Positions 9,036-64,000 of a DNA stretch of 64,000 nucleotides are shown in pieces. The DNA lies in the sequence record NC_061442.1; one strand, written 5' to 3'. Both the position numbers and the translations under genes were made by a program. The notes under the pieces are model-generated. The model worked only from the letters and a program-made list of their open reading frames with translations. It did not search any database and was not told where the DNA came from. Positions within the stretch are counted from its first letter, which is position 1. Each line of letters opens with the position of its first letter.

Positions 9036-10295
9036 ATGGCACGTGGATTTGGTGACATTCAGGACAACAGCAAACGTGATAGTCTGCGTGAGTCCGAAAT
9101 CTTTGAAATCTTCCCGCTCTCAAAGAAAGCAAACGGTAACTGGGTATCAATTCGCCTGTTAGATCTCGACCTGCTTCCAATCAAGAAGCACTGGATCAAG
9201 ATCATGGGCGGCAAAGACAAAGATAAAGAAATCAAAATCCCGCGCATGTGCGTTAACTTCGATCCGGATAATCAGGGTAAGCCTCTGAACGGTATGAAGT
9301 GCCCGTACTGCGGTATTGCACACGGCAACGACGAATCTGGTGCGCCAGCGCAGTATGACTATAAGTGGTATGCGCAAGCGATCATCCGTGACGAACAGGC
9401 CGCTGCGCCACGTAAAATGCCAAAGCTCACGAAGAAAGAGCAGAAGTCCGGCAAGAAAGAAATGGGTAGCGAGTCTTGGACTCCTATCATGTGTATTCCT
9501 CTGTCTAACTCTCTGGCCGGTAAGATCAAAGAGCTGGGTGAGCGTAATATTCACACGGTGAAAGACAAGAAATCCGGCAAGAAGTCCAAGCAGGCGTTTC
9601 AGGTCAACCATCCGAAGTACGGTTGTGATATCGAAATCAAATACAACCCGAAAAAATCCCCTGCTGAACGTTACACAATCGAACGTGGCGATCACACACC
9701 ACTGACCGGCGACGAGAAAGAATATCTGACCTGGGACTTCGATAACTGGAACGAGATCTACGATATGCTCGGCCGTCTGAACGAAGAAGCTGCTATGGCT
9801 GACTTCAAGAAGATGGACGTTATCGGCGTTAACACCAACGACTCTGACGATGGTGACGACGAGGACGATGATGACGACATGGCGCTGGGCAGTAAGAAGA
9901 AAGGCGGCAAGGCAGACAAGAAAAAACGTCGCAGCGATGATGACGATGACGATGGTGACGAGGATGATGAAGACGAAGACGATCATCGTCCGTCTAAGTC
10001 TAAAAAGTCCAAGCCGACCAAGTCTCGCAAAATGCTGGATGACGACGAAGATGACGATGACGACGAAGACGATGATCGTCCGTCTAAGTCTAAAAAGTCC
10101 AAGAAGTCCAGCAAAACCTCTAAGTCGTCCAAGAAGTCTAAGAAGTCAGATGATGACGAAGACGAAGACGACAAGCCAGCGAAGAAGAAAAAGAAATCTT
10201 CTGATAAGGTAAAATCGTCCGATAAGAAGAAGAAGAAAAAGTCTTCTGATGATGACGACGACAAGCCTGCGAAAAAGAAAAAGAAGAAAAAGTAA
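9036..10295 (+). CDS. single-stranded DNA-binding protein (T4 gp32-like) with long D/K/S tail
   Basis: SIRLL...KHW...MCV...KCPYC...WYAQAIIRD...GCDIEIKY pattern typical of gp32-like SSBs; lies between sigma and recA. Confidence 0.65.
   Translation: MARGFGDIQDNSKRDSLRESEIFEIFPLSKKANGNWVSIRLLDLDLLPIKKHWIKIMGGKDKDKEIKIPRMCVNFDPDNQGKPLNGMKCPYCGIAHGNDESGAPAQYDYKWYAQAIIRDEQAAAPRKMPKLTKKEQKSGKKEMGSESWTPIMCIPLSNSLAGKIKELGERNIHTVKDKKSGKKSKQAFQVNHPKYGCDIEIKYNPKKSPAERYTIERGDHTPLTGDEKEYLTWDFDNWNEIYDMLGRLNEEAAMADFKKMDVIGVNTNDSDDGDDEDDDDDMALGSKKKGGKADKKKRRSDDDDDDGDEDDEDEDDHRPSKSKKSKPTKSRKMLDDDEDDDDDEDDDRPSKSKKSKKSSKTSKSSKKSKKSDDDEDEDDKPAKKKKKSSDKVKSSDKKKKKKSSDDDDDKPAKKKKKKK
9972..10103 (+). repeat. 42-nt direct repeat (9972-10013 and 10062-10103, one mismatch) in the SSB tail
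   Basis: GACGAAGACGAT(C/G)ATCGTCCGTCTAAGTCTAAAAAGTCCAAG. Confidence 0.9.
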
Positions 10296-49236: not shown

Positions 49237-50883
49237 ATGTCATTCGATCTTCGTCAAAACTTACTGCTTGTCCGTGACGCTACTCTGACAGGCAAACCGC
49301 TGTTCTATTTCTACAACGCTATGGGTCGTGAGATGGTACTCACAGGTGACGTGCTACGTGAGATTCTTGAGCGTCAGAAAGAAGGTACGCTCTGCACCAA
49401 CACTTACTGGGGTTTTGCTACTGACCCAACACTGGAAGTTTGGTCGTTCGATGATAACAATGACCTAATGCTTCACCATCGCGTAGGCAAGTCCTGCACC
49501 ACATTCCTGCCTTACGAAATGATTGCAAATGCCCATGACGGATTCAAGCCAATCAACGGCATGTTCATTGAAGACAGCCTGCGCCGTATCATTGCTATTC
49601 ACCTAAAGGCGACTTGCCGTGAAGAACAAAAGATTACGTGGTTCGCTGACCTACCTGAGCCTGAGATGCGTAGCATGTTGCTTTCGTTTGGTCTGGGCCC
49701 TCTGCGGGTATCGCGTGAAGACAAAGAAGGTCTGATCAAACTGCATGACCAGTGGCTGGACGACTTCGACGACAAATACAAATATACGCACAACGCAATC
49801 GGCCTCGACGCTGACGAGAAGATTCCTGCTGACTATCGCCCTGAACGTATTCGTGACATTATGAAGCGTATGATGCACAACACCAAGACGCAGAAGATCA
49901 TGGTTCAGACTCTGAATGACCTGTTACGTCAGTGTAGTATCAGGGGCGATATCCCAATGCCTGGCGCCAACTTTAATCTCCAACAGTTGACCTGCTATTA
50001 CGCAACACACTTAATCTTTGCGCACGATGCTGATGCGAAGCTACGCAGCCTGATAGATAATCCTCAGTTTGTTGTCAACTTCATCTACGGTTGGTACCCG
50101 GACTATTCTTGGATTATGGTCAATGAGGAAACGTTCGACTATCAACAATCACTGGTACGCGCCGCGCTGATCTCGTTAAAGCGTCATGTGGAGAATGAAA
50201 TCGGTACGTACAAAATCGTTCACGGCATGGTTAAGTTCGCAGACGGTTTTGACCCTCATGTACCTGAGAAGGTAGAAATCGAAGAAGAGGACTTCGAAGA
50301 GGAAGAGGACCTCGAAGAGGAAGAGGAAGAAACTGACGATCAAGAGAAAGAAGTCATCGACTACCTGCGTACCAAAAGCGAAGATGAATTACGCAAAGTT
50401 GCGACAAGAAAGAAAATGGCGCGTCCTAATAAGTTGAAGTCTATGGACAAAGAAGAATTGATTGAGCTGTGTGCTGACTACTACGGCACTGAGATGCCTG
50501 AAGACTTCGACGAAGAGGAAGAGGAAGAAGAAAAAGAACAGGAGCGTGTGCGCATCGCCCGCAAGTTCCCCGTAGTGTTGCGTTATGATCGCATAGATTA
50601 TGACTATGTTCATCGTGCATTAGTTAAAATGGGCATACTTAAAAAGAACAAGACCCGCAAGCAGATGGACAAATCGCAGAAGCTGACCGTTGCTCAACAA
50701 CACGCCGCACTGCTTGTCACACTCAAAGAAGCTGTCTTGGACTCAGGTCAGGACGTTCTGTCTAAATTGGACGAAATAACGTTGTACCAGCTGGCCGCCT
50801 GCATGACGAAATTGAAAGAAGGTGATAGCTATCCTCGTGACGCTGCGTACCTGAAAGAACTAATTAAACACGCGGTCAAGTAA
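49237..50883 (+). CDS. 548-aa protein with Glu-rich linkers around an HEH-like module
   Basis: YLRTKSEDELRKVATRKKMARPNKLKSMDKEELIELCADY between E-rich tracts. Confidence 0.78.
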   Translation: MSFDLRQNLLLVRDATLTGKPLFYFYNAMGREMVLTGDVLREILERQKEGTLCTNTYWGFATDPTLEVWSFDDNNDLMLHHRVGKSCTTFLPYEMIANAHDGFKPINGMFIEDSLRRIIAIHLKATCREEQKITWFADLPEPEMRSMLLSFGLGPLRVSREDKEGLIKLHDQWLDDFDDKYKYTHNAIGLDADEKIPADYRPERIRDIMKRMMHNTKTQKIMVQTLNDLLRQCSIRGDIPMPGANFNLQQLTCYYATHLIFAHDADAKLRSLIDNPQFVVNFIYGWYPDYSWIMVNEETFDYQQSLVRAALISLKRHVENEIGTYKIVHGMVKFADGFDPHVPEKVEIEEEDFEEEEDLEEEEEETDDQEKEVIDYLRTKSEDELRKVATRKKMARPNKLKSMDKEELIELCADYYGTEMPEDFDEEEEEEEKEQERVRIARKFPVVLRYDRIDYDYVHRALVKMGILKKNKTRKQMDKSQKLTVAQQHAALLVTLKEAVLDSGQDVLSKLDEITLYQLAACMTKLKEGDSYPRDAAYLKELIKHAVK

Positions 50884-50922
50884 GACCTGCGTAAACAATA
50901 CCTAACATTGACGGGAAATAAA

Positions 50923-51345
50923 ATGAAATTTGAACAAAACATTCTGGTAGTAAATCGCATTGCTCTTATCATGGACGACGAATTAGTTCAGAAGTGGGGC
51001 GAAGCTGCAAATGCAAATCGTGACGCTACTGCGTATGCGACGGCCATTATTCTTGCCAAACTCCAGCAGAAGATTATAGCCGCAGTTGCTGAGGAGAATC
51101 CGGAAGCCTGTGTTCGTCCTGAGATATTGTGGACAGACTACGGCTCCATCTCCATCAACGGCCTGTTTATCATTGCGTCGGGTGCGGATGCTGAGTTGTT
51201 GAATCACGTAGAAGACCACGATTACTTGAACCACCTGCACACCATCAAACGTGTTGCTGAGGAGAATGGATTCAAGCTGACGGTTCTCCCTGTGAAGCAC
51301 CTGTTCCCATTCACCAACACTGAAATCCCTGAATCCATGAAGTGA
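50923..51345 (+). CDS. hypothetical protein
   Basis: Start estimated at ATG 50923. Confidence 0.68.
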   Translation: MKFEQNILVVNRIALIMDDELVQKWGEAANANRDATAYATAIILAKLQQKIIAAVAEENPEACVRPEILWTDYGSISINGLFIIASGADAELLNHVEDHDYLNHLHTIKRVAEENGFKLTVLPVKHLFPFTNTEIPESMK

Positions 51346-51653
51346 GGTGCCCTATGTCACACAAACAAATCCTGATGAATGATGTTGCTATCGTCCTAAC
51401 TATGAGTGAGCGCCGCGCGTTCCTCGGACCGAAAGCTGACGGCTTTGTGTATCTGCCATCTAAGGATGCTCTCACGAAATTTGAGGCGCATATCAAGAAG
51501 TATGGCAATCGTGATGACTATGCGTTTATTGACCATCGTGAGCTACATTCTATTAGCTCTGCGGGCATTGTCGCTATTGCTCATGCTGTCGAGTCTGATT
51601 CTGAGCAGCCATGGCTGTGGACGAAAGAAGACTTCCGCGTCAAGCTGTGGTAA
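51342..51653 (+). CDS. hypothetical protein
   Basis: GTGA overlap; alternative ATG at 51354. Confidence 0.62.
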   Translation: MRCPMSHKQILMNDVAIVLTMSERRAFLGPKADGFVYLPSKDALTKFEAHIKKYGNRDDYAFIDHRELHSISSAGIVAIAHAVESDSEQPWLWTKEDFRVKLW

Positions 51654-51706
51654 GCATAAAACTGGCTAAAATCGTGGTATCAGTCTGAACCGTCCTATGA
51701 TATAAT
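51654..51706 (+). promoter_or_regulatory. conserved phage promoter, copy 8
   Basis: GCATAAAACTGGCTAAAAT ... TGATATAAT; 37 nt. Confidence 0.82.
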
Positions 51707-51759
51707 AGAAGCGTAGCTTGTGCTGCGCTTTTTTAACATATGTCTGAGGAGACAACAAA

Positions 51760-52224
51760 ATGCTCGAAGAAATCAAACCAACCCCATCCGACTTAGAACT
51801 GCAAGACCAGATGGTCGATGCGGCCGCCCAGAAGATTATCGAATTGAAACCTGAATGGGTTGACGTTTGTGCCGCAGGTCTGCGCCTGTATCTGTCCGTG
51901 TGTGAACAACTTGGTGGTCCTATTCCTGAATTGCGTTTCGTCCACAACGGCAAGCCATGCCGCATTCAGTTTAACTTGAATGAAGTATCGGAAGGTACCG
52001 AGTTCGTAGCAAATGAAATCGACAAAGAAAAGCAAATGGCAATTGCCGACGAAATGCTGAAAACTGCCGAAGCATGTCCGAACGGCCACTCGCTGCTGGA
52101 TATAGCTATTTGCTCTGGTCGCCTGTTCATGATTGGTTATGACGGCCTTGCAGGTACTCTCGATAAGATCTGCATTCGTTGTAATCAGAAGAACTACACC
52201 ATGAATCTGGTTAAAGGTGAATAA
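51760..52224 (+). CDS. hypothetical early protein with Cys/His cluster
   Basis: First gene after promoter copy 51654; CPNGH...CIRC. Confidence 0.75.
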   Translation: MLEEIKPTPSDLELQDQMVDAAAQKIIELKPEWVDVCAAGLRLYLSVCEQLGGPIPELRFVHNGKPCRIQFNLNEVSEGTEFVANEIDKEKQMAIADEMLKTAEACPNGHSLLDIAICSGRLFMIGYDGLAGTLDKICIRCNQKNYTMNLVKGE

Positions 52225-52225
52225 C

Positions 52226-52885
52226 ATGAAACCTGAATACACTTTACTCAAACGCAGCAAGGTCGATGTTAACCGTTTTGCTTTCGTACATGACGGCAAG
52301 ATACTAGCTAACTTCACCGATGGCCAGTTGTACAGAACATTGGAGAAGCTCGGTCGATCAACATCCTTTAAAGACGTTGATGTGATTTGGAGAGACGGCA
52401 CTCGCACCGTCGAAGAACTGCGAGTGACTGAGCACCGCCACTTTGTTCGTTTTGATACTTGCGAGTACGATCATGCAATCTGTCTGATGATGCGGGCGCA
52501 AGGTCTGCCTGTCGAACTCTCTGTTCCTGTAGACGTGCGTAAGCTGTTTGACGAGCACGGCCCGCTTATTACTTCAATCTGTGTACCTTGTGAACTCGCA
52601 GATGACCTAAAGCCTGCACTTGCGCGTTTCATCCCAGACGAAGATGACGACGAAGATGAAGATGACGACGAGTGGGTTGACTTAGAGGATGATGTAGATG
52701 AAGATGACTTCGGATTCCGCCCAGAAGATTTACGTCCTCAACTGAGTGACTTCGGATATCGTGCCGCGGACTGGGTTGTCACTTTGACTGATGATCAAAT
52801 CAGCGATGTGCATAGTCTTGAAGTCGGTATGGACCCAGATATTGAACTGCCTCGTGCTGATGATGCGAAGGAAGAATTTTTCTAA
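52226..52885 (+). CDS. acidic hypothetical protein
   Basis: AAGGTG SD; D-rich tract. Confidence 0.72.
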   Translation: MKPEYTLLKRSKVDVNRFAFVHDGKILANFTDGQLYRTLEKLGRSTSFKDVDVIWRDGTRTVEELRVTEHRHFVRFDTCEYDHAICLMMRAQGLPVELSVPVDVRKLFDEHGPLITSICVPCELADDLKPALARFIPDEDDDEDEDDDEWVDLEDDVDEDDFGFRPEDLRPQLSDFGYRAADWVVTLTDDQISDVHSLEVGMDPDIELPRADDAKEEFF

Positions 52886-53076
52886 TGAAAACGATTAACG
52901 AACAGGTCAACGAATTGAAACAGCGCGGCGTGCTTATCATCGAAGAACACCAGAAGCATACGCTACCTGATTTGACCTTCACGCTTGATTGTCTGTGTAT
53001 CACTCATACGAAGCGGGAAGTAGAGACAACCACGCGCGGCCGCGTTGTTAAGATTCGCCTGACACACATTCACTAA
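52885..53076 (+). CDS. hypothetical protein
   Basis: TAATG coupling. Confidence 0.55.
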   Translation: MKTINEQVNELKQRGVLIIEEHQKHTLPDLTFTLDCLCITHTKREVETTTRGRVVKIRLTHIH

Positions 53077-53088
53077 CTTTGTGGTCTT

Positions 53089-53163
53089 GGCCCGCCCGTC
53101 CAGAGATGCTCACCCCCAATGAGGTGCCTCGCGCAGAGGCATGACGGTCACCGGGTCCTTTTT
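53089..53163 (+). ncRNA. candidate structured intergenic RNA (multi-branch)
   Basis: Nested GGCCCG/CGGGTC and CCGTC/GACGG stems enclosing two hairpins, then T5. Confidence 0.35.
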
Positions 53164-53218
53164 AGAGCGCACTACCCTAGTACGCTGTACAAAGTAAAAC
53201 AATCAACAGGAGGCTGTT

Positions 53219-53578
53219 ATGAAGTTCAACGAAGTATCCAAAGAGGCGCAAGTCGCCCTAATGTCAAGTGCCTTGGCTGGCGTAATCGAAGCGTTCACGC
53301 GTGAAGATGGAGACGAAGGTCGCAAGATTCTAGTCTTAGCACTCAAGCAAGTCGGTCTGACTGTAGACGAGTTCGGCGCTCTTATCTCTGACTTGTCTCC
53401 AGAAGTTGAGCTTGAAATTGTCAGTGTTATGGAAGCTGCCGATGCAGAGCCGGACGAAGATGACGACGACGAAGAACCTGCTGACGACGACTCTGATACA
53501 GACGCAGACGGCTGGCAGAACCTGCATGAAGATCGCGTGTGTCTTGTATGCAACCATGAAAGCTGCATCTGTCACTAA
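53219..53578 (+). CDS. acidic protein with C-terminal Cys/His cluster
   Basis: AGGAGG SD; VCLVCNHESCICH. Confidence 0.72.
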   Translation: MKFNEVSKEAQVALMSSALAGVIEAFTREDGDEGRKILVLALKQVGLTVDEFGALISDLSPEVELEIVSVMEAADAEPDEDDDDEEPADDDSDTDADGWQNLHEDRVCLVCNHESCICH

Positions 53579-53581
53579 TCT

Positions 53582-53634
53582 GCATAAATCTGGACAAAAC
53601 GACGGTTGTCTCAAATAGCTGCCTGAACTATACT
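53582..53634 (+). promoter_or_regulatory. conserved phage promoter, copy 9
   Basis: GCATAAATCTGGACAAAAC ... TATACT; 37 nt. Confidence 0.75.
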
Positions 53635-53639
53635 ATATA

Positions 53640-53836
53640 GACAGCGAGACAACGTTCTCTCTGAATGCCTTTGTTATGCTTTAGTCGTGTGTTTTCTATT
53701 TTCCCGGGCACACGGCTCTTTTTAGAGTGACTTCACTGAGGTTGCTTTAAAAAGAGTTCGATACTCTTTGAGCGCGTCGGGCTTTACGCGGTTTCCGCCT
53801 TACGTGCTCTCATGCTAAACCGCAAAGGAAATTGAA
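53640..53836 (+). ncRNA. candidate structured 5' leader or small RNA
   Basis: About 200 nt untranslated after promoter 9; 8-bp and 16-bp stems. Confidence 0.4.
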
Positions 53837-54544
53837 ATGCCTACTACTTCATGTCCTAAGACAGAAGACAAGTTCTCCCGTGCTCGCGCTGCTAAGAACT
53901 CTCCTGAGCGTCAGGCCGCGGCCATCAAGAAAACGCCACGAGGACCTTCCTCGGTTCGCCCTAAATCGACGGCAGATCGTGAGCCTAAGATTCGTGACGA
54001 GGAGCGTGTGTACAATCTCGTACATGCAATTCTGAGCGCGTGGAAAGCTGATGTGGGACATGCTGAAAACACGGCAGCATCTGCTGGTATCATCAAAGTG
54101 TCACGTCGTAATATTGAAGGTGCCCTGCGTGACCTCAAGAATACGCGCTTCACTAAAATCCCGACGCTCATTAACGATATCTTGACAGGCTCCGATATCT
54201 GCGCTGAGTTTGGTCGTTGGGTATACGTCGAGCACGATAGCCCTGATTGGATTTTCGTGCGTCTGCCTGAAAACAGCACACCTGTGATTCGTGCTGATGT
54301 AAGCGTAGGTAAAACGGACGAAACGGCAACGTCCGTGACGACCTCTAGCGAAGTGCTTCTGGAAGCGTTCGAGGCCAGTGACGACGAAATTGAGATACTC
54401 GAATGTAACGATCAGGATATTGAAGACCTCGAATCTGCTGGGATGCGCAAGCGTCTGATAGATGCGAAAATCATCAAACCGGAAGCTGCCTCGAAGCTGT
54501 CACGCAATGACTTAATGAAGCTCTGCGCGTACTACAGCGCATAA
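53837..54544 (+). CDS. protein with basic N-terminus and C-terminal HEH-like module
   Basis: AAAGGA SD; ends DIEDLESAGMRKRLIDAKIIKPEAASKLSRNDLMKLCAYYSA. Confidence 0.75.
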   Translation: MPTTSCPKTEDKFSRARAAKNSPERQAAAIKKTPRGPSSVRPKSTADREPKIRDEERVYNLVHAILSAWKADVGHAENTAASAGIIKVSRRNIEGALRDLKNTRFTKIPTLINDILTGSDICAEFGRWVYVEHDSPDWIFVRLPENSTPVIRADVSVGKTDETATSVTTSSEVLLEAFEASDDEIEILECNDQDIEDLESAGMRKRLIDAKIIKPEAASKLSRNDLMKLCAYYSA

Positions 54545-54592
54545 GCAATAATAAGCAGGCAGTCTACATGCTGCCTGCTATCTGCGAAGTAT

Positions 54593-54646
54593 GCAGAAAA
54601 CTGGACAAAATCGTGGTTGTTATCTGACGGCCACCTATGCTATAAT
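54593..54646 (+). promoter_or_regulatory. conserved phage promoter, copy 10
   Basis: GCAGAAAACTGGACAAAAT ... TGCTATAAT; 38 nt. Confidence 0.8.
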
Positions 54647-54703
54647 AGATTCAGACGCAATAGTGCGTCGCAAACAAAACACTTATACTGAGGAGTATTA
54701 ATC

Positions 54704-56323
54704 ATGGCACGTATCGAAACTAACACTAACCTGGTTGGCAAAACTATCGTCCTGCTGAACGGCACCAAAGCTAAAATCGAAGATGCAATCGCGTCTGGTT
54801 ACAAAGTGAAAGGCCAGACCAAGCGTATCGCCACTCGCTGCGTTATCAAAGAAGGCGCTCACTTTAAAGAAATCGAGCGCATGAACATGAGCCAGCTGGA
54901 AGATACAGGCGAAGGTTACGTGAAGCTGAAAGATGCGAAAGCTGCGAAAGCGTCAACCAAGAAACCTTCTGCGAAAGAGAAGGCGCCAAAAGCAGGCAAG
55001 AAAGCCGCCCAGCCAGCGAAAGAAAAAGAACCTAAGGTTCGTCGCAAATCTTCTAAAGAGAAAGAAGACGAATATCAGGACTTGGCTCACGCTATCATCA
55101 AAGGTGGTAAACGTGCGGCGCCTGTTGAAATCGCTGAGATCGACGGCGACCTGACTGACTGCGTTGCTCAACGTCTGGTAGACGTGCTGAATAATAGCGA
55201 AGTTGCGAAGCTGTGCGCTGATAACAAAACGCCGATCGCAAACGCAATTGAAGTGACGTACGGCGCTGAGTTCGCCCCTGAGACCAACGTCATGCAGATC
55301 ACGCTGAGTCTGCAATACGCTAAGCCTGTTCAAACGCTGTCACGTCCGACGCTGGAAAACGCAGAAGCTATCGCGTTACGTGCTGAGAAAATGGCGGCGC
55401 CTAAGCTGTCGATGAAACTCAAGAAAGCGATTCGTGAAGCATTCAGCCTCGAAGACGCGAATGACCTTGAGCTTGGAACTGTGTTGCTGTCTGACGGCGC
55501 TGAATTTGTTTACTTCGGCGAATCTGCGAAGCATGTCGGCAAAGCGCTGCTGTATGTTGTAGAGACCGACAAGTTCAAATCTGTGCTGGGCTCTACGCTG
55601 GGTGAGTACGAAATCCCAGACGCAGAGGAAGAAGAGGAAGAGGAGGAAGAAGTTGAAGACGAATCCGAAGAGGAGGAAGAAGAAGACGGCGAAGAAGAAG
55701 ACGGCGAAGAAGAAGACGGCGAAGAAGAAGACGGCGAAGAAGAAGACGGCGAAGAAGAAGACGGCGAAGAAGATTCTGCCGAATACGACTACGTTGCCGT
55801 GAACAAAGATCAGCTCGATATGGTCAACAAGAAAGTGACCGCTAAGTATCACGCTGCGCTGGCCGAACGTTTCAACACGACCGAAGAAGTTCTGATTCCG
55901 GGTCTGGTACTAACAGACGGCGAAACAACCTTCGCTTACCTGGGTTGCGATAGCAAAGGCGGTCTGCTGGTAATCGACTGTGGTGATGACGGCGAAGGCG
56001 AAGACGTGCTGATGTATAGCAAGTCTGATATCAAGTCTCTGGATGACTTCAATCCTGTGATGGGCGAAGCTGACGAAGACGGCGAAGAATCAGACGGCGG
56101 CGAAGAATCAGACGATGAAGATCTGGACGAAGAAGACGGCGAAGAAGAAGAAGAAGACGGCGAAGATGACGACTTCGACTTTGACGATGTGCCAGAAGCT
56201 GATATCGAAGATCTGACCGAAGACGAACTGCGTGACCGCGTAGTCGAAGCCGGCCTGACCACTCCGCGTAAAGCTGAGAACATGAATGAAGCTAAACTGC
56301 GCAAGCTGCTGAAAAGCGCATAA
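54704..56323 (+). CDS. Glu/Asp-rich multidomain protein (acidic paralog), C-terminal HEH-like module
   Basis: First gene after promoter copy 54593; (EDGEE)6; shares N- and C-terminal domains with 56406-57665. Confidence 0.82.
   Translation: MARIETNTNLVGKTIVLLNGTKAKIEDAIASGYKVKGQTKRIATRCVIKEGAHFKEIERMNMSQLEDTGEGYVKLKDAKAAKASTKKPSAKEKAPKAGKKAAQPAKEKEPKVRRKSSKEKEDEYQDLAHAIIKGGKRAAPVEIAEIDGDLTDCVAQRLVDVLNNSEVAKLCADNKTPIANAIEVTYGAEFAPETNVMQITLSLQYAKPVQTLSRPTLENAEAIALRAEKMAAPKLSMKLKKAIREAFSLEDANDLELGTVLLSDGAEFVYFGESAKHVGKALLYVVETDKFKSVLGSTLGEYEIPDAEEEEEEEEEVEDESEEEEEEDGEEEDGEEEDGEEEDGEEEDGEEEDGEEDSAEYDYVAVNKDQLDMVNKKVTAKYHAALAERFNTTEEVLIPGLVLTDGETTFAYLGCDSKGGLLVIDCGDDGEGEDVLMYSKSDIKSLDDFNPVMGEADEDGEESDGGEESDDEDLDEEDGEEEEEDGEDDDFDFDDVPEADIEDLTEDELRDRVVEAGLTTPRKAENMNEAKLRKLLKSA
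55682..55771 (+). repeat. perfect 15-bp tandem repeat x6 (GAAGACGGCGAAGAA = EDGEE)
   Basis: Read directly from the sequence. Confidence 0.95.
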
Positions 56324-56405
56324 CGAACTACCGTAACTACGAAATAGTGTGCGGCTCTTACTGGGTCGCATATTTGACAAATAAAGCTGATTGAGGAATC
56401 ACACT

Positions 56406-57665
56406 ATGTCAAACGCAAACAAAATTCTGCTTAACGCTCGTGTACGCCGTTTAGATGGGACCATTACTTACATCAACAAAGTGAACGCTAACGGCTATAG
56501 CACCGATGCGAAAGGCCCGCAGATTCCTGTGAAACGCATTGTGCTTGCAGGCAAAACGCTCAAAGAGATTGAAGCGCCGTTCGAGAGAGGCGAGTATATC
56601 ATTGTACAGGGCATTGCAGTGAAACTGAACAAGCGCCAGCAACGTGAACTTGCAGACAAGACGCTGGATGAGAAAGCGCTGCGTCCTGACTTCGGGCGTC
56701 TGGCGTTCATTGACCGCGACGACGGCAAAGCAACTGACGGTAAGAAAGTGAAGCCGAAAGCTGCGAAGAAAGAAGGCGGGTTGAAAGCGACTCGTAAGCA
56801 GAACGGCGATACACGCACAAAGAAAGAGCGTAAGGCAGAAGCTGCCGCCGCCGCTGAATCGCTCGACACAATCAAGTCAACTCCAGTTGATCGCAAGGGC
56901 GAACTGATAGCGACCATCGACGCGACCATTGAAGACGCGACAAGCAAAGAGCGCCGTAAGTTGTTGTCTGAATCGTTCGACATGGACTGGAAAGACATTA
57001 AGAAGCACGGCGGTAAGGGTGTCGTTAAACATCTGGGCCGTAAAGCTGCGCAATCTGCCGTAAGCAAAATGCGCGCGACTGTTACGCAGGACGCATTCAT
57101 TAAGCAGATGCCTGCTGAGTTGAAGCGCTTGATTCAAGATCGTCGGCTCGTACTGAACAAGCGCCAGATTGAAGCTGTGCTCTCTGCGCTTGGGCTTGAT
57201 GTGAAGTTCTATAACATCGCCATGCAGACGTTGCTTGGCAATCTGTCGCTGGCTGTAGACGACACGCTGGCTGACGACAAAGCAGATAAGAAAGTGAAGA
57301 AGCTGAAAAAGCATAAAGCCTCTAAGCCGCAGTATCTGTCAGAGAAAGACCAGCAACGTCGTATGAAGAAAATGAAAGTGAAGCTGCTGGCTCCTACTGA
57401 GAAAGGCATGAAGAAAGCCAAAGCGAAATTGAAGCAGGCGAAAGTTACGCTTGCCGACAAGCTGGGCATCTCGCCGAAAGAAATCAAACGCGGTCTGATT
57501 GCATACCGTCCTAACGGCGTTGATTACATGTTTGTTGCCAGTGATGCTCGCGGCCCAATCTTCATCGACAAAGACGGTGACCCGTGCGTGTATACTTACG
57601 AGAATCTCGAATCGACATTCGACTTCCGTCTGACTCAACCTTCTGAACTGGACGCTACTGTATGA
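56406..57665 (+). CDS. Lys-rich multidomain protein (basic paralog)
   Basis: GAGGA SD before ATG 56406; K-rich linkers. Confidence 0.82.
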   Translation: MSNANKILLNARVRRLDGTITYINKVNANGYSTDAKGPQIPVKRIVLAGKTLKEIEAPFERGEYIIVQGIAVKLNKRQQRELADKTLDEKALRPDFGRLAFIDRDDGKATDGKKVKPKAAKKEGGLKATRKQNGDTRTKKERKAEAAAAAESLDTIKSTPVDRKGELIATIDATIEDATSKERRKLLSESFDMDWKDIKKHGGKGVVKHLGRKAAQSAVSKMRATVTQDAFIKQMPAELKRLIQDRRLVLNKRQIEAVLSALGLDVKFYNIAMQTLLGNLSLAVDDTLADDKADKKVKKLKKHKASKPQYLSEKDQQRRMKKMKVKLLAPTEKGMKKAKAKLKQAKVTLADKLGISPKEIKRGLIAYRPNGVDYMFVASDARGPIFIDKDGDPCVYTYENLESTFDFRLTQPSELDATV

Positions 57666-58045
57666 CCAACAATGAGATCATCCTGACTGGTGTTTTCGCT
57701 CAACTGTATTCGCGGCTAGTAATGGCCGCTATACAGCGCGTCCATGTATACTACTCTGATCTCGCTCCTGTGGTGTTTGGTGTGCAGTTCACTCGCGTAG
57801 GGAAAGCGCAGTACAAAGCACTGGAGGCGCTCATTGCCGAGACGATGCGCCTCGATATTCAAAACGGCAGGCCACCACTTGCGGCCTTATACGTGTCACG
57901 CGCAAACGACACCAAGAAACCTACCCAGTCATTCTTCAATGAGTATCTCAAATTGACTGGCAAATATCTTTCTGACGATGAATGGTTGATGCTCGTTGAA
58001 CATGTGTGGAAACAATATACACCAGACCTTCGGGAGCCATCATGA
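57662..58045 (+). CDS. hypothetical protein
   Basis: ATGA overlap. Confidence 0.68.
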   Translation: MTNNEIILTGVFAQLYSRLVMAAIQRVHVYYSDLAPVVFGVQFTRVGKAQYKALEALIAETMRLDIQNGRPPLAALYVSRANDTKKPTQSFFNEYLKLTGKYLSDDEWLMLVEHVWKQYTPDLREPS

Positions 58046-58503
58046 AAAAGTCAAAAGTTGTAATCAGTCGCGGTGGGTATCGACCCGTCTCGCCGGAAGA
58101 GGCCAAGAAGTTGGTTGTTGAAATGCTGCTTGCTTCAATCGGCGTTAACCCAACGATTATGAGCCAGCAGATGTTGCTGAACATTGCGAACTACAATTAC
58201 CTCACGTCTATCGCAGACACGGGTAAGGCAAATACAGCGAACCAGATAGTTCTACATAAAACTGTAAAAGAACTTAATGCGTTCTGTAGATTGCACAAGA
58301 TTCCTCTGGGCTTACTAATTATGCCCCATACATCGGCGAGCGATTACTCCGGTGACGAGGTTGTAGCGATTCCCTGGGAGTCTGTGCGCAAGAATGCACC
58401 GAGCCAGTCCGCTGTCAACTCCCTGTTCCAAACAGTCGAAGCTGATGGCTATCCGCAGTTTGTGACTGATGCGAAAACAGTAGAGGACTACAATGTTTTA
58501 TGA
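58042..58503 (+). CDS. hypothetical protein
   Basis: GGGAG SD; ATGA overlap. Confidence 0.68.
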   Translation: MKKSKVVISRGGYRPVSPEEAKKLVVEMLLASIGVNPTIMSQQMLLNIANYNYLTSIADTGKANTANQIVLHKTVKELNAFCRLHKIPLGLLIMPHTSASDYSGDEVVAIPWESVRKNAPSQSAVNSLFQTVEADGYPQFVTDAKTVEDYNVL

Positions 58504-59773
58504 TCACGTATTCAGCCATGACGAGAAGCAACTTCTCTTGTCTGTAGCTGAGTCTAAATATCTGGTGCGGCTTGATTGCCCTGAGTATTTGAAGAAATCA
58601 AAACACTCGATTGAAATTCGTCATACAGTGACCAACCGTGGCGAACAACGTCGAAGCGGTGTTATCAATACAACGTTTGTACCGCGTATTCATGCCTCAA
58701 CTGTGCAGCGCCTGTTACGTGAGATTCGTGACAACGCAACTATCAGTTCGGCTAACAGCCTTGCCTCGTTATTTGAACTTGGGCTTGGCGTACCGAAGCA
58801 ACGTGATATCGCAACGTACTTGCACGACTACTCTCGGGAGAATGACAAGAAGGGCGTTGGTATCAAGTACATCCGCAAACTGATTAACGAGTATCACCGC
58901 AAGCACCGTCATAGTTTTGCTGGCAGTCGCTGGATGATGCCTGCTGCGTATACAGCGAACATGCTGAACATGCAGTCTTTCATTCATCTGAAAGAAAACG
59001 GCTACAGCAAGAAAGTGAAAGTGCCTGACGGTCTGCCTGTTGTTCTGATCTATCAGAATACGAATCACGCCGAAGCTGAGTTCTCTATGTGTGACGCCTT
59101 CGCTATTAGCCCTCTGGGTTATCCGATGCCGTTCGCCCAGATTGCGATGCGCCCTGAGTTCAAAGCTGCGCCGAAGACCTTTCAATCTAAAGCGCTGCGT
59201 GGGCAAGGCATGTATAGCATGATCATGGGTATCGTTCACTGGGACAAAGGTGACGCACTGACGAACATACGCGAACTGAACGCCATTGACGACGAGCCGT
59301 ACCTGACGTTGTTGTGTGACGAGCAATACGCAGATCGTCGTTCGCCTGAGTATCAGAAGCTGCTGGACAAACGTGCTGAGTTTGCTGAACAGCGGCATGA
59401 GTGGGCAGAAGTGATTGCGAAGTATGGCAACACAACTCGCACACTCAAGCCCAAGCAGTTAGAGCGACTGGAGCAGGCAGAGAACTTCTTCAAAGAACGC
59501 AAAACGTTTATGGACGAGTTTGATAAGTTCGAGAAGAAAGAGAACCATCAGGCTGCTAAGAAGTTTGCAGTAGCCAGTGCGAAGTTCGCTGCCGTTGATT
59601 GTGGAACTATTGCTGACCGTTCGACGTATATGTCAGTAGCGTCGGGCCTCGACAAAGTTAATAAGATTCTCACTAAGTGGGGATTCACCACGGTTGATAC
59701 TGTTAATAGTAGTTTGAAGAAGTCTATCCTTACATTCGACCCAACAACCGCTACTCGCGTGTGGTCACTGTAA
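58493..59773 (+). CDS. hypothetical protein (426 aa)
   Basis: GAGGA SD. Confidence 0.75.
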   Translation: MFYDHVFSHDEKQLLLSVAESKYLVRLDCPEYLKKSKHSIEIRHTVTNRGEQRRSGVINTTFVPRIHASTVQRLLREIRDNATISSANSLASLFELGLGVPKQRDIATYLHDYSRENDKKGVGIKYIRKLINEYHRKHRHSFAGSRWMMPAAYTANMLNMQSFIHLKENGYSKKVKVPDGLPVVLIYQNTNHAEAEFSMCDAFAISPLGYPMPFAQIAMRPEFKAAPKTFQSKALRGQGMYSMIMGIVHWDKGDALTNIRELNAIDDEPYLTLLCDEQYADRRSPEYQKLLDKRAEFAEQRHEWAEVIAKYGNTTRTLKPKQLERLEQAENFFKERKTFMDEFDKFEKKENHQAAKKFAVASAKFAAVDCGTIADRSTYMSVASGLDKVNKILTKWGFTTVDTVNSSLKKSILTFDPTTATRVWSL

Positions 59774-59797
59774 ACCTTTTATCTGAGGAGATAACGT

Positions 59798-62794
59798 ATG
59801 TCGGAAAATAACCTGGGCGCTGCTGCAACCTTCGGCTCTGAGACTCAAAAGCAATTAAACGACCAACAGCGTCGTGCGCATTCTGCTGAGTCCGGCCACG
59901 TAAACAAATGTACCATCGTCGTTCTTACTGCGCTTAACGCGCATGGTCGATTCTCTTACCTGACTGCTGACGAGCAACTGCGTGAGCGTTCAATCGAAGG
60001 TAAGGTGATGGACCGTCTGCCGGATCTGATTGGCCGTGCATCGGGTCCTTCTACTGATCCGAACAGCGCGTACCACATCCTGCATCCAAACAATGGCGTG
60101 CCTACTCGTATCGACGAGCGTATCAAAGTTGGCGAAGCGGATTCGGTCATCATTTCATATACTGTAAATAAAGCAGTGTCAGAGATGTATGGCAGTTTAT
60201 CGCTGGCGCTGTTTAGTGCTGGTGAAAGTGATATCGCTGATTTGGCGGCTGAGTATGGTATTCACTCCATCTCAATCGTCGAAGAGGCGAAAGCGCCTGA
60301 CTATATCAAAGCTCTTACTGAACAGGTAGAAGCTCTGAATATTGTAAATCTCACTAGCATTGATGAAGCTGACGGTGCTTTTGAGAAACCAGTAATCAAC
60401 TACAGCGCCCTGCCGGGTAATCCAATCAACGTACTGTCCGGCGCTGTGCGTACTTTCATTATGCAAACTCTAAACGGCGAAGTATTCGCTGCGATTCCAA
60501 ATAACGGAGAACTGAACGTGAAACAACCTACTAACGCAACGCCGGTCAATCTGGACGAAGACTTCGATTCAGAAGACGAAGTGGTTGATCAGCAGGGCGG
60601 CGAAAGCGACGACGAAGAAGTGACAGGCACTGACCTGTTCGGCTATAAAGCTGAAACACTGACCGTCGCGCAAATGACAGAAGCTCTTGAAGCTCTGTCC
60701 TACGATGTTAGCGCGATGGACGAAGCGGGCATCCGTGAGTCGTTCGAAACTGAACAGCAAATCTGGATGGAAGGTAACGACGCTGCCGAAGAAGACGGCG
60801 AAGAAGAAGATGCCGAAGACGAAGAAGAATCTGATGATGAAGATTCCGAATTCGATCCTTCTCTGTATCTGGGCCACCTGCTGTCTGCTGACCAGCTGGA
60901 CCGTTCTGCACTGAAAGTTCTGGTGCGTACTCAAGACCTCAAAGTCATGAAGTCCGACACCGAAGAAACGCTGACTGCGAAACTGCTCGAACTGGTCGAA
61001 GGTGCAACCGAGCAGGAAATGGCTGAACTGATTGACACCTTCGTAGGCGCGCTGCAAGAGCGTGAGATCGATTGTCCTAACCTGCTGGCCGCGCTGTCGT
61101 CTGACGAAGACGAAGAAGAAGACGCGGAAGAGTCAGAAGAAGAAGATGAAGAAGAATCTGAGGATGAAGAATCCGAAGATGAAGATGATTCTGATTCTGT
61201 GCAAGACCAGATCGATGCCGTTACTGACCCGCTCGACTACTTCCAGTTCGCTGGTGGTTCGCTGACTGCTGAACAGCGTGTTGCTGCTGTCGAAGCGATG
61301 GGCGAAGACGTTACCGGCTTGAACATCGTGCAGGTAATGAAAGCGTTCTCTCGCATTCAGGGTCAGACTAACGAAATCGACGTTGACGCAGAAGAAAGCG
61401 AAAGCAACGTTGCTGAACTCGAAGCGCTGCTGGGCCAGTACGACGATGCTACCGTGCAGCACGTCGCAGAAAGCCTGGGCGTTAACGTTGACGAATGCGA
61501 AACCGCAGAAGACATGATCGAAGCGATTGTCAATGGCGGTACCGAAGACCAGTTCGCTGCGGTTGAAGAAATCGCAACCAGCTACGGTGTTGACCTGTCA
61601 GAAGTTGCTGACGGCGAAGACCTGGACTTTGTTGACGCGGTTCTGTCTGTGCTGCCGTCCTTCCTGTCAGACGACGAGCAGGAAGAAGATGAAGAAGATG
61701 AAGAATCTGAGGAAGAAGAATCCGAAGACGGCGAAGAAGAAGATGAAGACGAGCAGGACTCTGAGATCGATTCTTCTGAAAACGAAAGCCTGAAATTCAT
61801 CAAGTCTGTTAACTCTGACAACGCCGTGGGCACTCTGCTGGCAGTCGATATGGATCAGACTGTAGTTATCAACTTTACTCTGACTGACGGCGATACCTAC
61901 AGCGCTGTTGAATCTGAGCTGGTCGATATCAATGGTTTCAACTACCGCTTCCCATTCAACCTGGGCAAAGCGTCTAAAGGTACTGCGCCGGGTTCAATGC
62001 TGCTGCCAGCTCAATCCCTGCTGGACATTGTTGAGCGCGTGAACACTACTCGCTTCCTTGCCGATCCGAAAACGTTCGACATTGGCGCATGGGCTGAAAG
62101 TCTGGAAGCAACGCTGGCAGAAGAAATTCCTGTCGCGCTGTATGCAGATCGTATTGAAGACGGCGTTGACCCAAGCGAAGCTGGTCTGGTTGTTGGTGAC
62201 TTCCTCGACGAAGAAGAACTGGAAGCCGCAACTGAGCTGGGTCACATCGACGCTGACGATGCCTCTGAACTGAACGGCGATCATCTGCCACTGGCAAGCC
62301 TGTATAACGCTCGCTCTCGCGTTCGCCCGGTTCGTGTAGACAGCGCTTACGTTGCACTGCACACCACAGTGATGAACGTCGCACTGCCTGGCTTCTGGAG
62401 CGAAGCACCTGTACAGCGCATGATTCAGGCGGCAGTTAACCGTGTCATCAATCTGGCTGAATCTGTTGAGAACGTTAAAGTGTATGCTGCGTTCACCATG
62501 GAGTCTGCTGCACTGCTGAACAACGGCCGTCTGTTTGAAGCGCTGGCAACTCTGCGTGAGTTTGAGCACGTCCAGTCTTACTCTGCTGCTGACGCTGCTA
62601 ACTTCGACGATGCCGAAGACGTGATCGAAGTAGCTGGTTCACTCGACACCCGTGACCTGCCGCTGTCTGTACTGGCTGGTGGTCTGGCTGGCGCATCGTT
62701 CGACAACGGCGGTGACCTGACCATTCTGGTTCCGTGCTTCACACAAGAAGAAGACGCGGACGAAGAAGAAGGCGACGACGGCGACGACGAATAA
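59798..62794 (+). CDS. 998-aa hyper-acidic protein with several two-helix modules
   Basis: GAGGAG SD; alternating E/D tracts and short helical repeats. Confidence 0.82.
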   Translation: MSENNLGAAATFGSETQKQLNDQQRRAHSAESGHVNKCTIVVLTALNAHGRFSYLTADEQLRERSIEGKVMDRLPDLIGRASGPSTDPNSAYHILHPNNGVPTRIDERIKVGEADSVIISYTVNKAVSEMYGSLSLALFSAGESDIADLAAEYGIHSISIVEEAKAPDYIKALTEQVEALNIVNLTSIDEADGAFEKPVINYSALPGNPINVLSGAVRTFIMQTLNGEVFAAIPNNGELNVKQPTNATPVNLDEDFDSEDEVVDQQGGESDDEEVTGTDLFGYKAETLTVAQMTEALEALSYDVSAMDEAGIRESFETEQQIWMEGNDAAEEDGEEEDAEDEEESDDEDSEFDPSLYLGHLLSADQLDRSALKVLVRTQDLKVMKSDTEETLTAKLLELVEGATEQEMAELIDTFVGALQEREIDCPNLLAALSSDEDEEEDAEESEEEDEEESEDEESEDEDDSDSVQDQIDAVTDPLDYFQFAGGSLTAEQRVAAVEAMGEDVTGLNIVQVMKAFSRIQGQTNEIDVDAEESESNVAELEALLGQYDDATVQHVAESLGVNVDECETAEDMIEAIVNGGTEDQFAAVEEIATSYGVDLSEVADGEDLDFVDAVLSVLPSFLSDDEQEEDEEDEESEEEESEDGEEEDEDEQDSEIDSSENESLKFIKSVNSDNAVGTLLAVDMDQTVVINFTLTDGDTYSAVESELVDINGFNYRFPFNLGKASKGTAPGSMLLPAQSLLDIVERVNTTRFLADPKTFDIGAWAESLEATLAEEIPVALYADRIEDGVDPSEAGLVVGDFLDEEELEAATELGHIDADDASELNGDHLPLASLYNARSRVRPVRVDSAYVALHTTVMNVALPGFWSEAPVQRMIQAAVNRVINLAESVENVKVYAAFTMESAALLNNGRLFEALATLREFEHVQSYSAADAANFDDAEDVIEVAGSLDTRDLPLSVLAGGLAGASFDNGGDLTILVPCFTQEEDADEEEGDDGDDE

Positions 62795-62850
62795 TATCGT
62801 CTAAACGAGTGGCTCGAAAGGGCCACTCACTTTCTTGGGGATCTGTAAAC

Positions 62851-63672
62851 ATGACACAAGAAGTAGACCACGGCGCAAACATCATTAAGATGGTAAGTGA
62901 CCGTGACGCTAAAATCCGTGAACTATCTGCTGACCTGACAGTGACTTCTGGAGGCAAAGCAGACGTGGAAGCGGAACTGCGTGAACTGTCTCTCGATCAT
63001 CTGGCACTCAAAATCAAGATGCGTAGCCGTGAGCGCGAACACGCCTCGGAGATTGCGCTGCGTGATGAACGCATTAAAGAAGTTGTTGGGTTCTGCAACG
63101 AACAAACAGTTGAAGTGAAGAACATCCGTGCTGAACTCGAATCTGTAAAACAAAAGAGTGAACCGGCTGCTGCACTGCCATTCGTTCTGCAATTGATAAT
63201 GTCTGCTGGTGTCGCGCACTACCATGCGATTATCGCACAATGCGCTATCGCTACTGTCAACAAAGCAACAAATAAAGTTGCCCGTGAACTGCGCGAAATT
63301 TATGATATTGATAATGTAGTGAAGCATCCTTCACTCTATCGTGTCGCTGTCCGACTGTGTACTCAGCTCGGTGTTTCGCCACCATCTCGCACCGAACTAT
63401 CGGCCGAGATTAAAGAGTATGTGGCCCAGAACATCGACCTGTACGTGAAAGACCCGCAGTACGCTACATCTGAATCCGCCTTGCGCCAGATTATCGCGGC
63501 GAAAAACAATGCCGCACATTATGGCTCTTATGGCCGTGACGTGTGCCGAATGTTCGACTGGCTCCCTGCACTAGCTGCTGGCCTGGACGACATTGAAGAT
63601 GACTACAACGATTTGGTGGAACAATCTGTCTATCAAGTCTGTCGTAATCTGATTAACGATAGCTTTTCATAA
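62851..63672 (+). CDS. coiled-coil protein
   Basis: Heptad-like N-terminal half; start uncertain (62851 or 62890). Confidence 0.7.
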   Translation: MTQEVDHGANIIKMVSDRDAKIRELSADLTVTSGGKADVEAELRELSLDHLALKIKMRSREREHASEIALRDERIKEVVGFCNEQTVEVKNIRAELESVKQKSEPAAALPFVLQLIMSAGVAHYHAIIAQCAIATVNKATNKVARELREIYDIDNVVKHPSLYRVAVRLCTQLGVSPPSRTELSAEIKEYVAQNIDLYVKDPQYATSESALRQIIAAKNNAAHYGSYGRDVCRMFDWLPALAAGLDDIEDDYNDLVEQSVYQVCRNLINDSFS

Positions 63673-63765
63673 TCTGTAAAAGTTACCTGTAATCGAATCT
63701 GTAAACACTAATTGAAGTTCGAACCGAGCGACAAGCTCACACTTATAAAATCCCGGAGCATTACA

Positions 63766-64000
63766 ATGGCTAAAGCAATTAAGTCCTCTAACCTGTCACC
63801 TACCCTGATCTCTCGTATTCAGAAAAAGTCTGGCTCCATCGGTACTTCTAAAGCTAAGCCTTCTGAACTGCCGCACGACATTCTGATCGAAACGGTGCAG
63901 GCTGTTGAGCTGATTGGCTTCATTACTGACCGCACCGAAAACAGCGTCACCATTCGTCACAAACGTGGTCATGGTTCTTCTGCGCAAGTTGTTTCTACCT
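63766..64000 (+). CDS. hypothetical protein, truncated by the window end
   Basis: GGAG SD; MAKAIKSSNLSPTLISRIQKKSG... open to base 64000; not in the ORF track. Confidence 0.72.
   Translation, partial: MAKAIKSSNLSPTLISRIQKKSGSIGTSKAKPSELPHDILIETVQAVELIGFITDRTENSVTIRHKRGHGSSAQVVST

Follow-up and report, generated by a model that had tools for sequence, protein, structure and literature searches.

A tandem pair of oppositely charged paralogs conserved in Erwinia and Dickeya jumbo phages

Buffering, chaperoning, or displacement of basic proteins is the mode of action of histone H1 with prothymosin-alpha, of the acidic histone chaperones, and of HMGB1 through its acidic tail. Histone chaperones and SSB-type tails usually bind through an acidic tract in which aromatic residues are embedded, and acidic tails of the kind found in HMGB1 and the RpoE delta subunit compete with nucleic acid. 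The cell biology of jumbo phages outside the nucleus-forming Chimalliviridae is poorly understood. Here we describe two neighbouring genes, gp317 (gene A) and gp318 (gene B), of Erwinia phage pEa_SNUABM_35 (NC_061442.1, genus Alexandravirus, 261,719 bp). They lie in a stretch of 64,000 nucleotides (nt) of that record, which was analysed as a whole and is referred to as the window; a window position equals the record position minus 186,000. Both genes are annotated as hypothetical in GenBank, and their open reading frames were confirmed on the + strand. Protein A is hyper-acidic and protein B hyper-basic, and, as judged from their sequences, they are tandem paralogs.

By composition and logic, and only in these respects, the pair resembles H1 with prothymosin-alpha, nucleoplasmin, NAP1, and the tails of FACT, in that a Lys/Ala/Pro polycation is paired with an aromatic-anchored polyanion. 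H1, prothymosin-alpha, and the histone chaperones have no sequence or fold relation to A or B, and the eukaryotic partners, unlike A and B, are not mutual paralogs and share no docking domains. Like HMGB1 and the RpoE delta subunit, A joins a basic, putatively nucleic-acid-facing part to a long poly-Asp/Glu stretch; unlike them, it has no match to an HMG box or HARE-HTH domain, carries two copies of a folded domain (D, see below) between its tracts, and ends in a helical tail. This tail, the last 39 residues, is predicted with high confidence to form short helices and resembles a two-helix DNA-binding motif of the HeH, SAP, LEM, or Rho_N kind; it recurs in the phage proteins gp316 and gp325, yet it matches no family model. 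Tandem charged paralogs of large phages are also found in T4 IPI-III and the phiKZ inner body. Those are late, protease-processed virion proteins, whereas A and B lie in an early-type operon of the non-structural arm.

Family sets of 36 and 39 relatives were collected, and 21 per family were aligned for profiles. The two families were found to share two modules, a beta-rich N module of ~ 58 amino acids (aa) and a helix-plus-beta D module of ~ 85 aa. The N-termini, which an earlier note made from the letters of this DNA alone had held to be alignable, match by BLASTP at 29% identity over 52 aa (expect value, E, 0.002), and the score of their local alignment (z = 7.4) was reached by none of 2000 shuffles. 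Profile-profile alignment of the two N-domains with hhalign gave a probability of 95% and E 3.8e-8. The hidden Markov model (HMM) of the A N-domain matched B-like proteins of distant relatives (E 9e-10 to 9e-6), and that of the B N-domain matched acidic proteins of divergent relatives (E 2e-11 to 4e-6), with reciprocal matches also seen within the window and in the genome. When the B-family profile was run against 1.8 billion protein representatives, an acidic, A-like protein of 480 aa (P0086) was matched via its N-domain (E 3e-5).

The D domain had likewise been noticed earlier, as a later domain common to both proteins and apparently present twice in the acidic one, and both observations were borne out. 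For the single pair A 359-452 and B 331-419, the alignment score (z = 4.4) was reached by 6 of 2000 shuffles. With hhalign, A 358-452 (D2) matched B 325-419 at a probability of 91% and E 9e-7, and the two copies within A, 225-305 (D1) and 358-452 (D2), matched each other at 95% and E 2e-8; 11 control pairs of unrelated segments scored at most 2%. The HMM of the B C-terminus also matched D2 of distant acidic relatives (E 4e-8 to 6e-5), and a stand-alone D protein (P0085) matched B's D domain by tblastn (E 6e-14 to 5e-9). Because profile, HMM, and shuffle evidence agree, the common N-terminus, the common later domain, and its duplication within A are confirmed, and the HHalign comparison that the earlier note had proposed as a check is significant for both modules. 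By these sequence comparisons, gp317 and gp318 are true paralogs in tandem, members of one modular family that spans two PHROGs. The common domains and opposite charges of PHROG 33433 and PHROG 32501 are recorded in no annotation that we saw.

The idea of one architecture holds for N and D and fails for the middle domains, A 121-235 and B 151-287, between which neither hhalign nor shuffle tests detected homology. Homology between N and D, between the second segment of B and either module, and between the A tail and D was also tested and rejected. No further copies of N or D were found elsewhere in the 262-kb genome. Full-length group HMMs placed A in PHROG 33433 (E 1.4e-199, 1-536) and B in PHROG 32501 (E 1.6e-158, 4-424), and no broken genes were seen.

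The opposite charge of the pair (-81 against +34) was observed to be a family trait, with polarity kept in all 42 members examined. Net charge runs from -53 to -84 in 21 of 21 A-family proteins and from +23 to +34 in 21 of 21 B-family proteins, down to 31-38% identity. Protein A contains 147 Asp and Glu residues against 66 Lys and Arg, and in a genome-wide greedy gene set positive charge places B within the top 1% and A within the bottom 1%. Linker lengths (22-54, 23-63, and 15-100 residues) and linker sequences differ widely within the families, without the sign ever changing. The linkers had been described as diverging in opposite directions; this is true of the linker before the last D domain, which is acidic in A and basic in B, and untrue of the first linker, which is basic in both and in A ends in an invariant VRR(K) motif. 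Acidic tract 1 of A contains a perfect 15-nt tandem repeat (6.5 copies, 55676-55773), so the tract changes by slippage, with selection apparently acting on charge and not on sequence. In both families conservation peaks in the N-domain, whose mean identity to the window protein is 81% in A and 86% in B versus 37-60% elsewhere.

AlphaFold2 models built with the family alignments predict disordered linkers (predicted local distance difference test, pLDDT, below 50) and mostly folded domains. The models of A and B are not confident overall, with mean pLDDT values of 64 and 73 and predicted template modelling (pTM) scores of 0.26 and 0.31. The tail of A was modelled as helices at 506-515, 521-525, and 529-538. 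Its module occurs once in gp316 (window 53837-54544) and twice in gp325, with an acidic stretch before every copy; judging by this recurrence, the tail is a mobile module. A whole-genome HMM scan did not detect it in the 998-aa gp322. The earlier note had linked the pair to an HEH family, and of this link the recurrence in gp316 and gp325 stands. HeH, SAP, and Rho_N models gave no Pfam match to the tail even at E 10, and for LEM the best PDB profile match was the LAP2 LEM-like domain at E 0.69. Coordinates of all features are collected in Table 1.

Table 1. Features of the A/B locus and related sites (window positions unless marked as record positions)
Feature	Position	Strand	Description
Gene A (gp317)	54704..56323	+	Hypothetical; 539 aa, isoelectric point 4.26, net -81; PHROG 33433, no assigned function
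A N-domain, aa 1-75	54704..54928	+	Module shared with B; most conserved A segment, 81% mean identity
A basic linker, aa 76-120	54929..55063	+	Lys/Ala/Pro-rich; family net +9 to +19; predicted disordered
A middle domain, aa 121-235	55064..55408	+	Alpha/beta; unrelated to B middle domain
A D1 domain, aa 236-305	55409..55618	+	First D copy, helix-plus-beta
A acidic tract 1, aa 306-358	55619..55777	+	Family net -16 to -44; length variable
A D2 domain, aa 359-452	55778..56059	+	Homologous to B C-terminal domain
A acidic tract 2, aa 453-500	56060..56203	+	Conserved acidic-aromatic motif DFDFDD; F493 invariant
A C-terminal tail, aa 501-539	56204..56320	+	Three helices, pLDDT about 90; also in gp316 (once) and gp325 (twice)
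Gene B (gp318)	56406..57665	+	Hypothetical; 419 aa, isoelectric point 9.9, net +34; PHROG 32501, no assigned function
B N-domain, aa 1-58	56406..56579	+	Six predicted beta strands; 86% mean identity in family
B small segment, aa 59-104	56580..56717	+	Beta/helix; uL24 (a ribosomal protein) matched weakly by profile
B basic linker 1, aa 105-150	56718..56855	+	Predicted disordered
B middle domain, aa 151-287	56856..57266	+	Helical, about seven helices
B basic linker 2, aa 288-330	57267..57395	+	Net +4 to +12; partly helical; precedes D, a place taken in A by acidic tract 1
B D domain, aa 331-419	57396..57662	+	Absent in Dickeya JA-type clade; stand-alone elsewhere
Promoter of A	54617..54646	+	Sigma70-like, extended -10: TTGTTA, 18-nt spacer, TG-n-TATAAT; directly 5' of A
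5' hairpin	54654..54669	+	6 bp, at predicted transcript 5' end; equivalents after same promoter motif elsewhere in window and in relatives
A ribosome-binding site (RBS) hairpin	54685..54698	+	5-bp stem, GAGG in 4-nt loop, 10 nt 5' of ATG
B RBS hairpin	56388..56401	+	5-bp stem, GAGG in loop, 9 nt 5' of ATG 56406
gp319	57662..58045	+	127 aa; third operon gene; overlaps end of B
gp320	58042..58503	+	153 aa; fourth operon gene; PHROG 33033, no assigned function
gp321	58493..59773	+	426 aa; fifth operon gene; basic (+13); PHROG 37619, no assigned function
gp322	59798..62794	+	998 aa; sixth operon gene; net -193; PHROG 36461, no assigned function; own GAGG-loop RBS
Terminator-like hairpin	62807..62828	+	9 bp, 6 G-C pairs; ends operon
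Recurrent extended -10 motif	24177, 38658, 42086, 47344, 51696, 54636; record 253154	+	Followed by hairpin at transcript start
GAGG of loop RBS	18733, 24221, 24737, 25536, 51746, 53210, 54690, 56393, 59785	+
gp325	record 250465-251250 (L009:1-750)		465 nt beyond window end; 261 aa, net -91; two tail modules, basic Lys/Ala segment
gp238 (SSB)	9036-10295		Last ~ 150 residues alternate poly-Asp/Glu and poly-Lys/Ser blocks (block polyampholyte)

The pair appears to open a six-gene operon, with B co-transcribed with A. A hairpin lies between the gp316 stop codon and the promoter of A, which agrees with consensus at 10 of 12 positions plus the TG and is the best site within 53000-63000. The claim that a promoter precedes both genes held in so far as an early-type promoter precedes the pair; it lies directly before A only, and none was found before B in a scan of the locus. 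The four genes downstream of B overlap or are closely spaced. In relatives, the promoter, 5' hairpin, and RBS stem-loop are conserved upstream of A, with compensatory changes in the RBS stem. The signals suggest early or middle expression as one six-gene transcript; given the host-type promoter, A and B are probably produced, alongside the DNA-metabolism genes, in the early or middle phase of infection.

These signals belong to larger sets. The promoter motif, C-Y-T-R-TG-M-TATAAT followed by a short hairpin, stands before several genes of the window; its strict form has eight matches in the genome, all on the + strand, one of them immediately before the large subunit of topoisomerase II. The GAGG-loop RBS claimed earlier for both genes was found at each. 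It takes the form of a 4-6 bp hairpin with a 4-nt loop, 9-10 nt before the start codon. Ten cases were counted on the + strand, of which nine, including those of A, B, and gp322, fall within 204-246 kb of the record; a shuffled-sequence control gave about seven GAGG-loop hairpins on both strands, whether or not a start codon followed. The open frame of B extends back to a TTG at 56391, and a start at that codon, as taken earlier, is not upheld: the annotated ATG at 56406 is most likely the start of B because the TTG sits within the RBS hairpin and the ATG follows the GAGG by 9 nt.

Neither family was found outside the jumbo phages of Erwinia and Dickeya (Alexandra, Y3, Yoloswag, AD1, and JA11/13/29/33 types) and metagenomic relatives. 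With the window's own phage included, gene A adjoins gene B in 17 of 18 loci. Of the 17 other loci, 16 show the order A-B-127-153-426-998, namely 12 IMG/VR genomes and four metagenomic loci (L003, L004, L006, and L007): an acidic A and a basic B are followed by proteins of ~ 127 and ~ 155 aa, then by a basic one of ~ 420 aa and a hyper-acidic one of 860-1065 aa. The IMG/VR set comprises 13 loci including that of the window's own phage, and these loci end inside the last gene. Two distant B-like proteins (P0079 and P0087) keep N and D and do not have the helical domain. A B homologue with 62% identity (P0019) comes from a 266,333-bp contig of a Salmonella enterica serovar Infantis assembly; its source is either a Salmonella-infecting relative of these phages or a contaminant in the assembly.

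D also occurs on its own, in proteins of 112-119 aa. In pEa_SNUABM_5, the stand-alone D gene gp342 (L032:5001-5360) overlaps the start of a GyrB-like topoisomerase gene by 8 nt and is translationally coupled to it, and in a metagenomic relative (L029:1516-1854) such a gene ends 14 nt before a GyrB-like topoisomerase gene. As read from gene arrangement, this coupling to topoisomerase II is the sole link we found from these modules to a protein of known function.

The wider neighbourhood is one of DNA metabolism. A and B lie in the + strand arm with genes for a sigma factor, SSB, UvsX, RNA ligase, and topoisomerase II; on the - strand, structural genes take up about 41 to 181 kb of the record. 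Genes for chimallin, tubulin, or multisubunit RNA polymerase are not annotated in the record. Of the nine proteins in the genome that have hyper-acidic tracts, five (gp309, gp313, A, gp322, and gp325) are encoded within 16 kb, at 235-251 kb of the record, which corresponds to window 49237-64000 and beyond. Three other hyper-acidic proteins are encoded among the head genes; one of them, of 681 aa and net -141, is annotated as an ATPase, and its gene adjoins those of the major head protein and the protease. Compared with the usual acidic SSB tip, the tail of the SSB (gp238) is of far greater length and more strongly patterned.

Searches for a known function returned little. Pfam, queried with the full proteins, the 42 family members, and nine isolated segments, gave no functional match for A or B, nor did NCBIfam, and neither library assigned a function to any operon partner; what appeared below threshold was noise (Nmad2 at 18 bits on D1 and compositional matches on the acidic tracts). 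PHROG holds no functional label for A, B, or any operon partner. HU/IHF, H-NS, Fis, and the histone fold gave no match in Pfam, NCBIfam, PDB sequences, or Foldseek, nor did NAP, nucleoplasmin, ASF1, Ocr, ArdA, or Arn for A in the same resources. PDB sequence and profile searches with A, B, the N-domain, the tail, gp321, and gp322 found nothing significant beyond a marginal match to uL24. Weak Foldseek matches (E above 0.5) were all to small beta-barrels of SH3-like, PWWP, PRC, or Tudor-like type, which says little beyond N and D being small barrels; domain-level fold matches may be missed because the linkers give low whole-chain pTM. Matches in BFVD were to uncharacterised proteins only: those of Yoloswag and JA13, a 119-aa protein of pEa_SNUABM_5, one 632-aa protein, and, weakly, PaBG.

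The function of the pair most likely concerns DNA or RNA handling. Our best reading, which we favour only tentatively, is that A and B form a co-expressed, charge-complementary, nucleic-acid-associated scaffold pair, with B as a polycationic binder and A as a polyanionic buffer or chaperone. One modular protein gave rise to both by tandem duplication, and the pair would be read from the host-type promoter as the first two genes of the operon, in early or middle infection. As non-enzymatic scaffolds, the two would dock on one target through the shared N-domain and the basic linker, the target being nucleic acid, a nucleoprotein complex, or each other through an ancestral interface; paralogs that derive from a self-associating ancestor often retain heteromeric contacts. 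B would bind and neutralise DNA or RNA as a polycation. A would be its polyanionic counterpart, whose two poly-Asp/Glu tracts may bind the basic segments of B or other basic proteins and thereby buffer, chaperone, or displace them, with the second tract supplying an acidic-aromatic motif. We infer nucleic-acid binding, contact between A and B, expression timing, and the chaperone-like relation. The proposal of a histone-plus-chaperone or complex-coacervate pair, made in the earlier note, is compatible with what was found.

Indirect support for this proposal, from context and composition, comes from the H1-like Lys/Ala/Pro linkers of both proteins, the expression signals shared with topoisomerase II, the acidic-aromatic motif in tract 2 of A, the coupling of a D gene to topoisomerase II, the local polyelectrolyte cluster, and the SSB tail. 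Several observations weigh on the other side. In a distant, short metagenomic contig (L005), a gp321-like gene comes straight after the A-like gene, with no B between them. In the Dickeya JA-type clade (L023-L026 and L006), B is 310-331 aa long and has no D domain, and A keeps both D copies. It follows that a strict one-to-one partnership via D, and even the presence of B, is not universal. The net charges of A and B show no visible co-variation across genomes, and AlphaFold2 modelled the N-domain of A poorly, with low confidence. No DNA- or RNA-binding, histone-like, chaperone, or DNA-mimic family was matched in Pfam, NCBIfam, or PDB sequence and fold searches, and in Foldseek neither AlphaFold2 model had a match in the PDB below E 0.5. 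Literature searches turned up neither a study of A or B nor, for this clade, a transcriptome or an accessible virion proteome. The same distant contig also encodes, upstream of its A-like gene, a basic protein of 249 aa (L005:111-860) with repeated DLDFDFD-type motifs between basic linkers, reminiscent of the DFDFDD of A.

Of the other explanations, the one that survives best, though we consider it doubtful, gives the two proteins independent roles. A would be a polyanionic decoy for host DNA-binding proteins (nucleoid proteins, RNA polymerase, or defence nucleases), acting shortly after infection, and B an unrelated DNA or RNA binder, with the shared N-domain merely sending both to one place. 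Known analogues are acidic decoys of phages, among them Ocr and Arn, and the RNA polymerase delta subunit of Bacillus with its acidic tail. The position of A as the first gene after a strong host-type promoter, with an RBS that looks efficient, would suit such a protein, as would its poly-Asp/Glu tracts with their acidic-aromatic motif and the A-like gene that occurs without an adjacent B. The adjacency of A and B at all other loci argues against it, and a simple decoy would need neither the basic linker nor the two folded D domains that A carries. No DNA-mimic family was matched either, with no PADLOC or anti-defence search aimed at A or B.

Somewhat less probable again, and unlikely in our estimate, is that A, B, gp321, and gp322, together with the SSB tail and gp325, act as scaffold of a condensate, a complex coacervate that would gather replication and recombination of the phage DNA into a membrane-less factory. 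The conserved extreme charges within one operon (-81, +34, +13, and -193) make two acid/base pairs, the long linkers are predicted to be disordered, and the folded N and D modules could provide multivalent contacts. The block-patterned SSB tail, the poly-acidic gp325 with its two A tail modules, the crowding of hyper-acidic proteins in 16 kb, and the DNA-metabolism neighbourhood also fit. The support lies in composition only, and large phages often have charged low-complexity tracts, which can arise as neutral expansions; in addition, A is far more charged than B, which precludes a one-to-one charge balance. We regard as similarly improbable the broader proposal that the operon is a phage polyelectrolyte system, in which the A/B and gp322/gp321 pairs would share docking modules and, with the SSB tail and gp325, build a membrane-less replication compartment or a chromatin-like coat with its own chaperone.

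A role at RNA or the ribosome, in which the pair would bind rRNA or mRNA through a uL24-like N-terminal part of B and modulate translation or RNA stability, seems very unlikely. Over its positions 54-117, the B-family profile aligns with the central and C-terminal part of two uL24 proteins (KOW plus an SH3-like barrel), its only PDB sequence matches; the E-values, 0.004 and 0.024, are marginal. Ribosomal SH3-like barrels appear among the Foldseek matches of B, at E above 3. In Pfam, neither KOW nor ribosomal L24 matched any of the 21 B-family members or the isolated fragment, the segment in question is absent from A, and the genomic context is one of DNA metabolism. Least credible of all is that A and B are packaged internal head or ejection proteins travelling with the DNA: they are paralogous, highly charged proteins of a jumbo phage, and the basic one could accompany DNA, but their genes are in the non-structural arm on the + strand, well away from the - strand head genes, under a host-type promoter class shared with topoisomerase II, a location and promoter type that make packaging improbable (the Y3 orthologues are only hypothetical in a RefSeq record that marks some virion structural proteins, which does not settle their presence in the virion).

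The scaffold-pair reading thus remains the one we prefer, and charge-complementary, nucleic-acid-associated proteins are a known functional kind; we see only a small chance that something categorically new is at work here. Regardless of function, two new domains, N and D, are defined, two PHROGs are linked, and gene coupling connects D with topoisomerase II. Alexandra, Y3, Yoloswag, AD1, and JA-type phages have been found to share a conserved six-gene operon of early type, and its leading pair, which combines the same folded modules with opposite extreme charges, is a natural experiment in charge-driven function. If the pair does organise DNA or buffer DNA-binding proteins, it would be a prokaryotic-virus counterpart of histone/chaperone logic and would offer a concrete way into how these phages arrange replication. 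Should the operon as a whole prove to be a polyelectrolyte system, it would represent a principle of organising phage DNA that has not been described so far.

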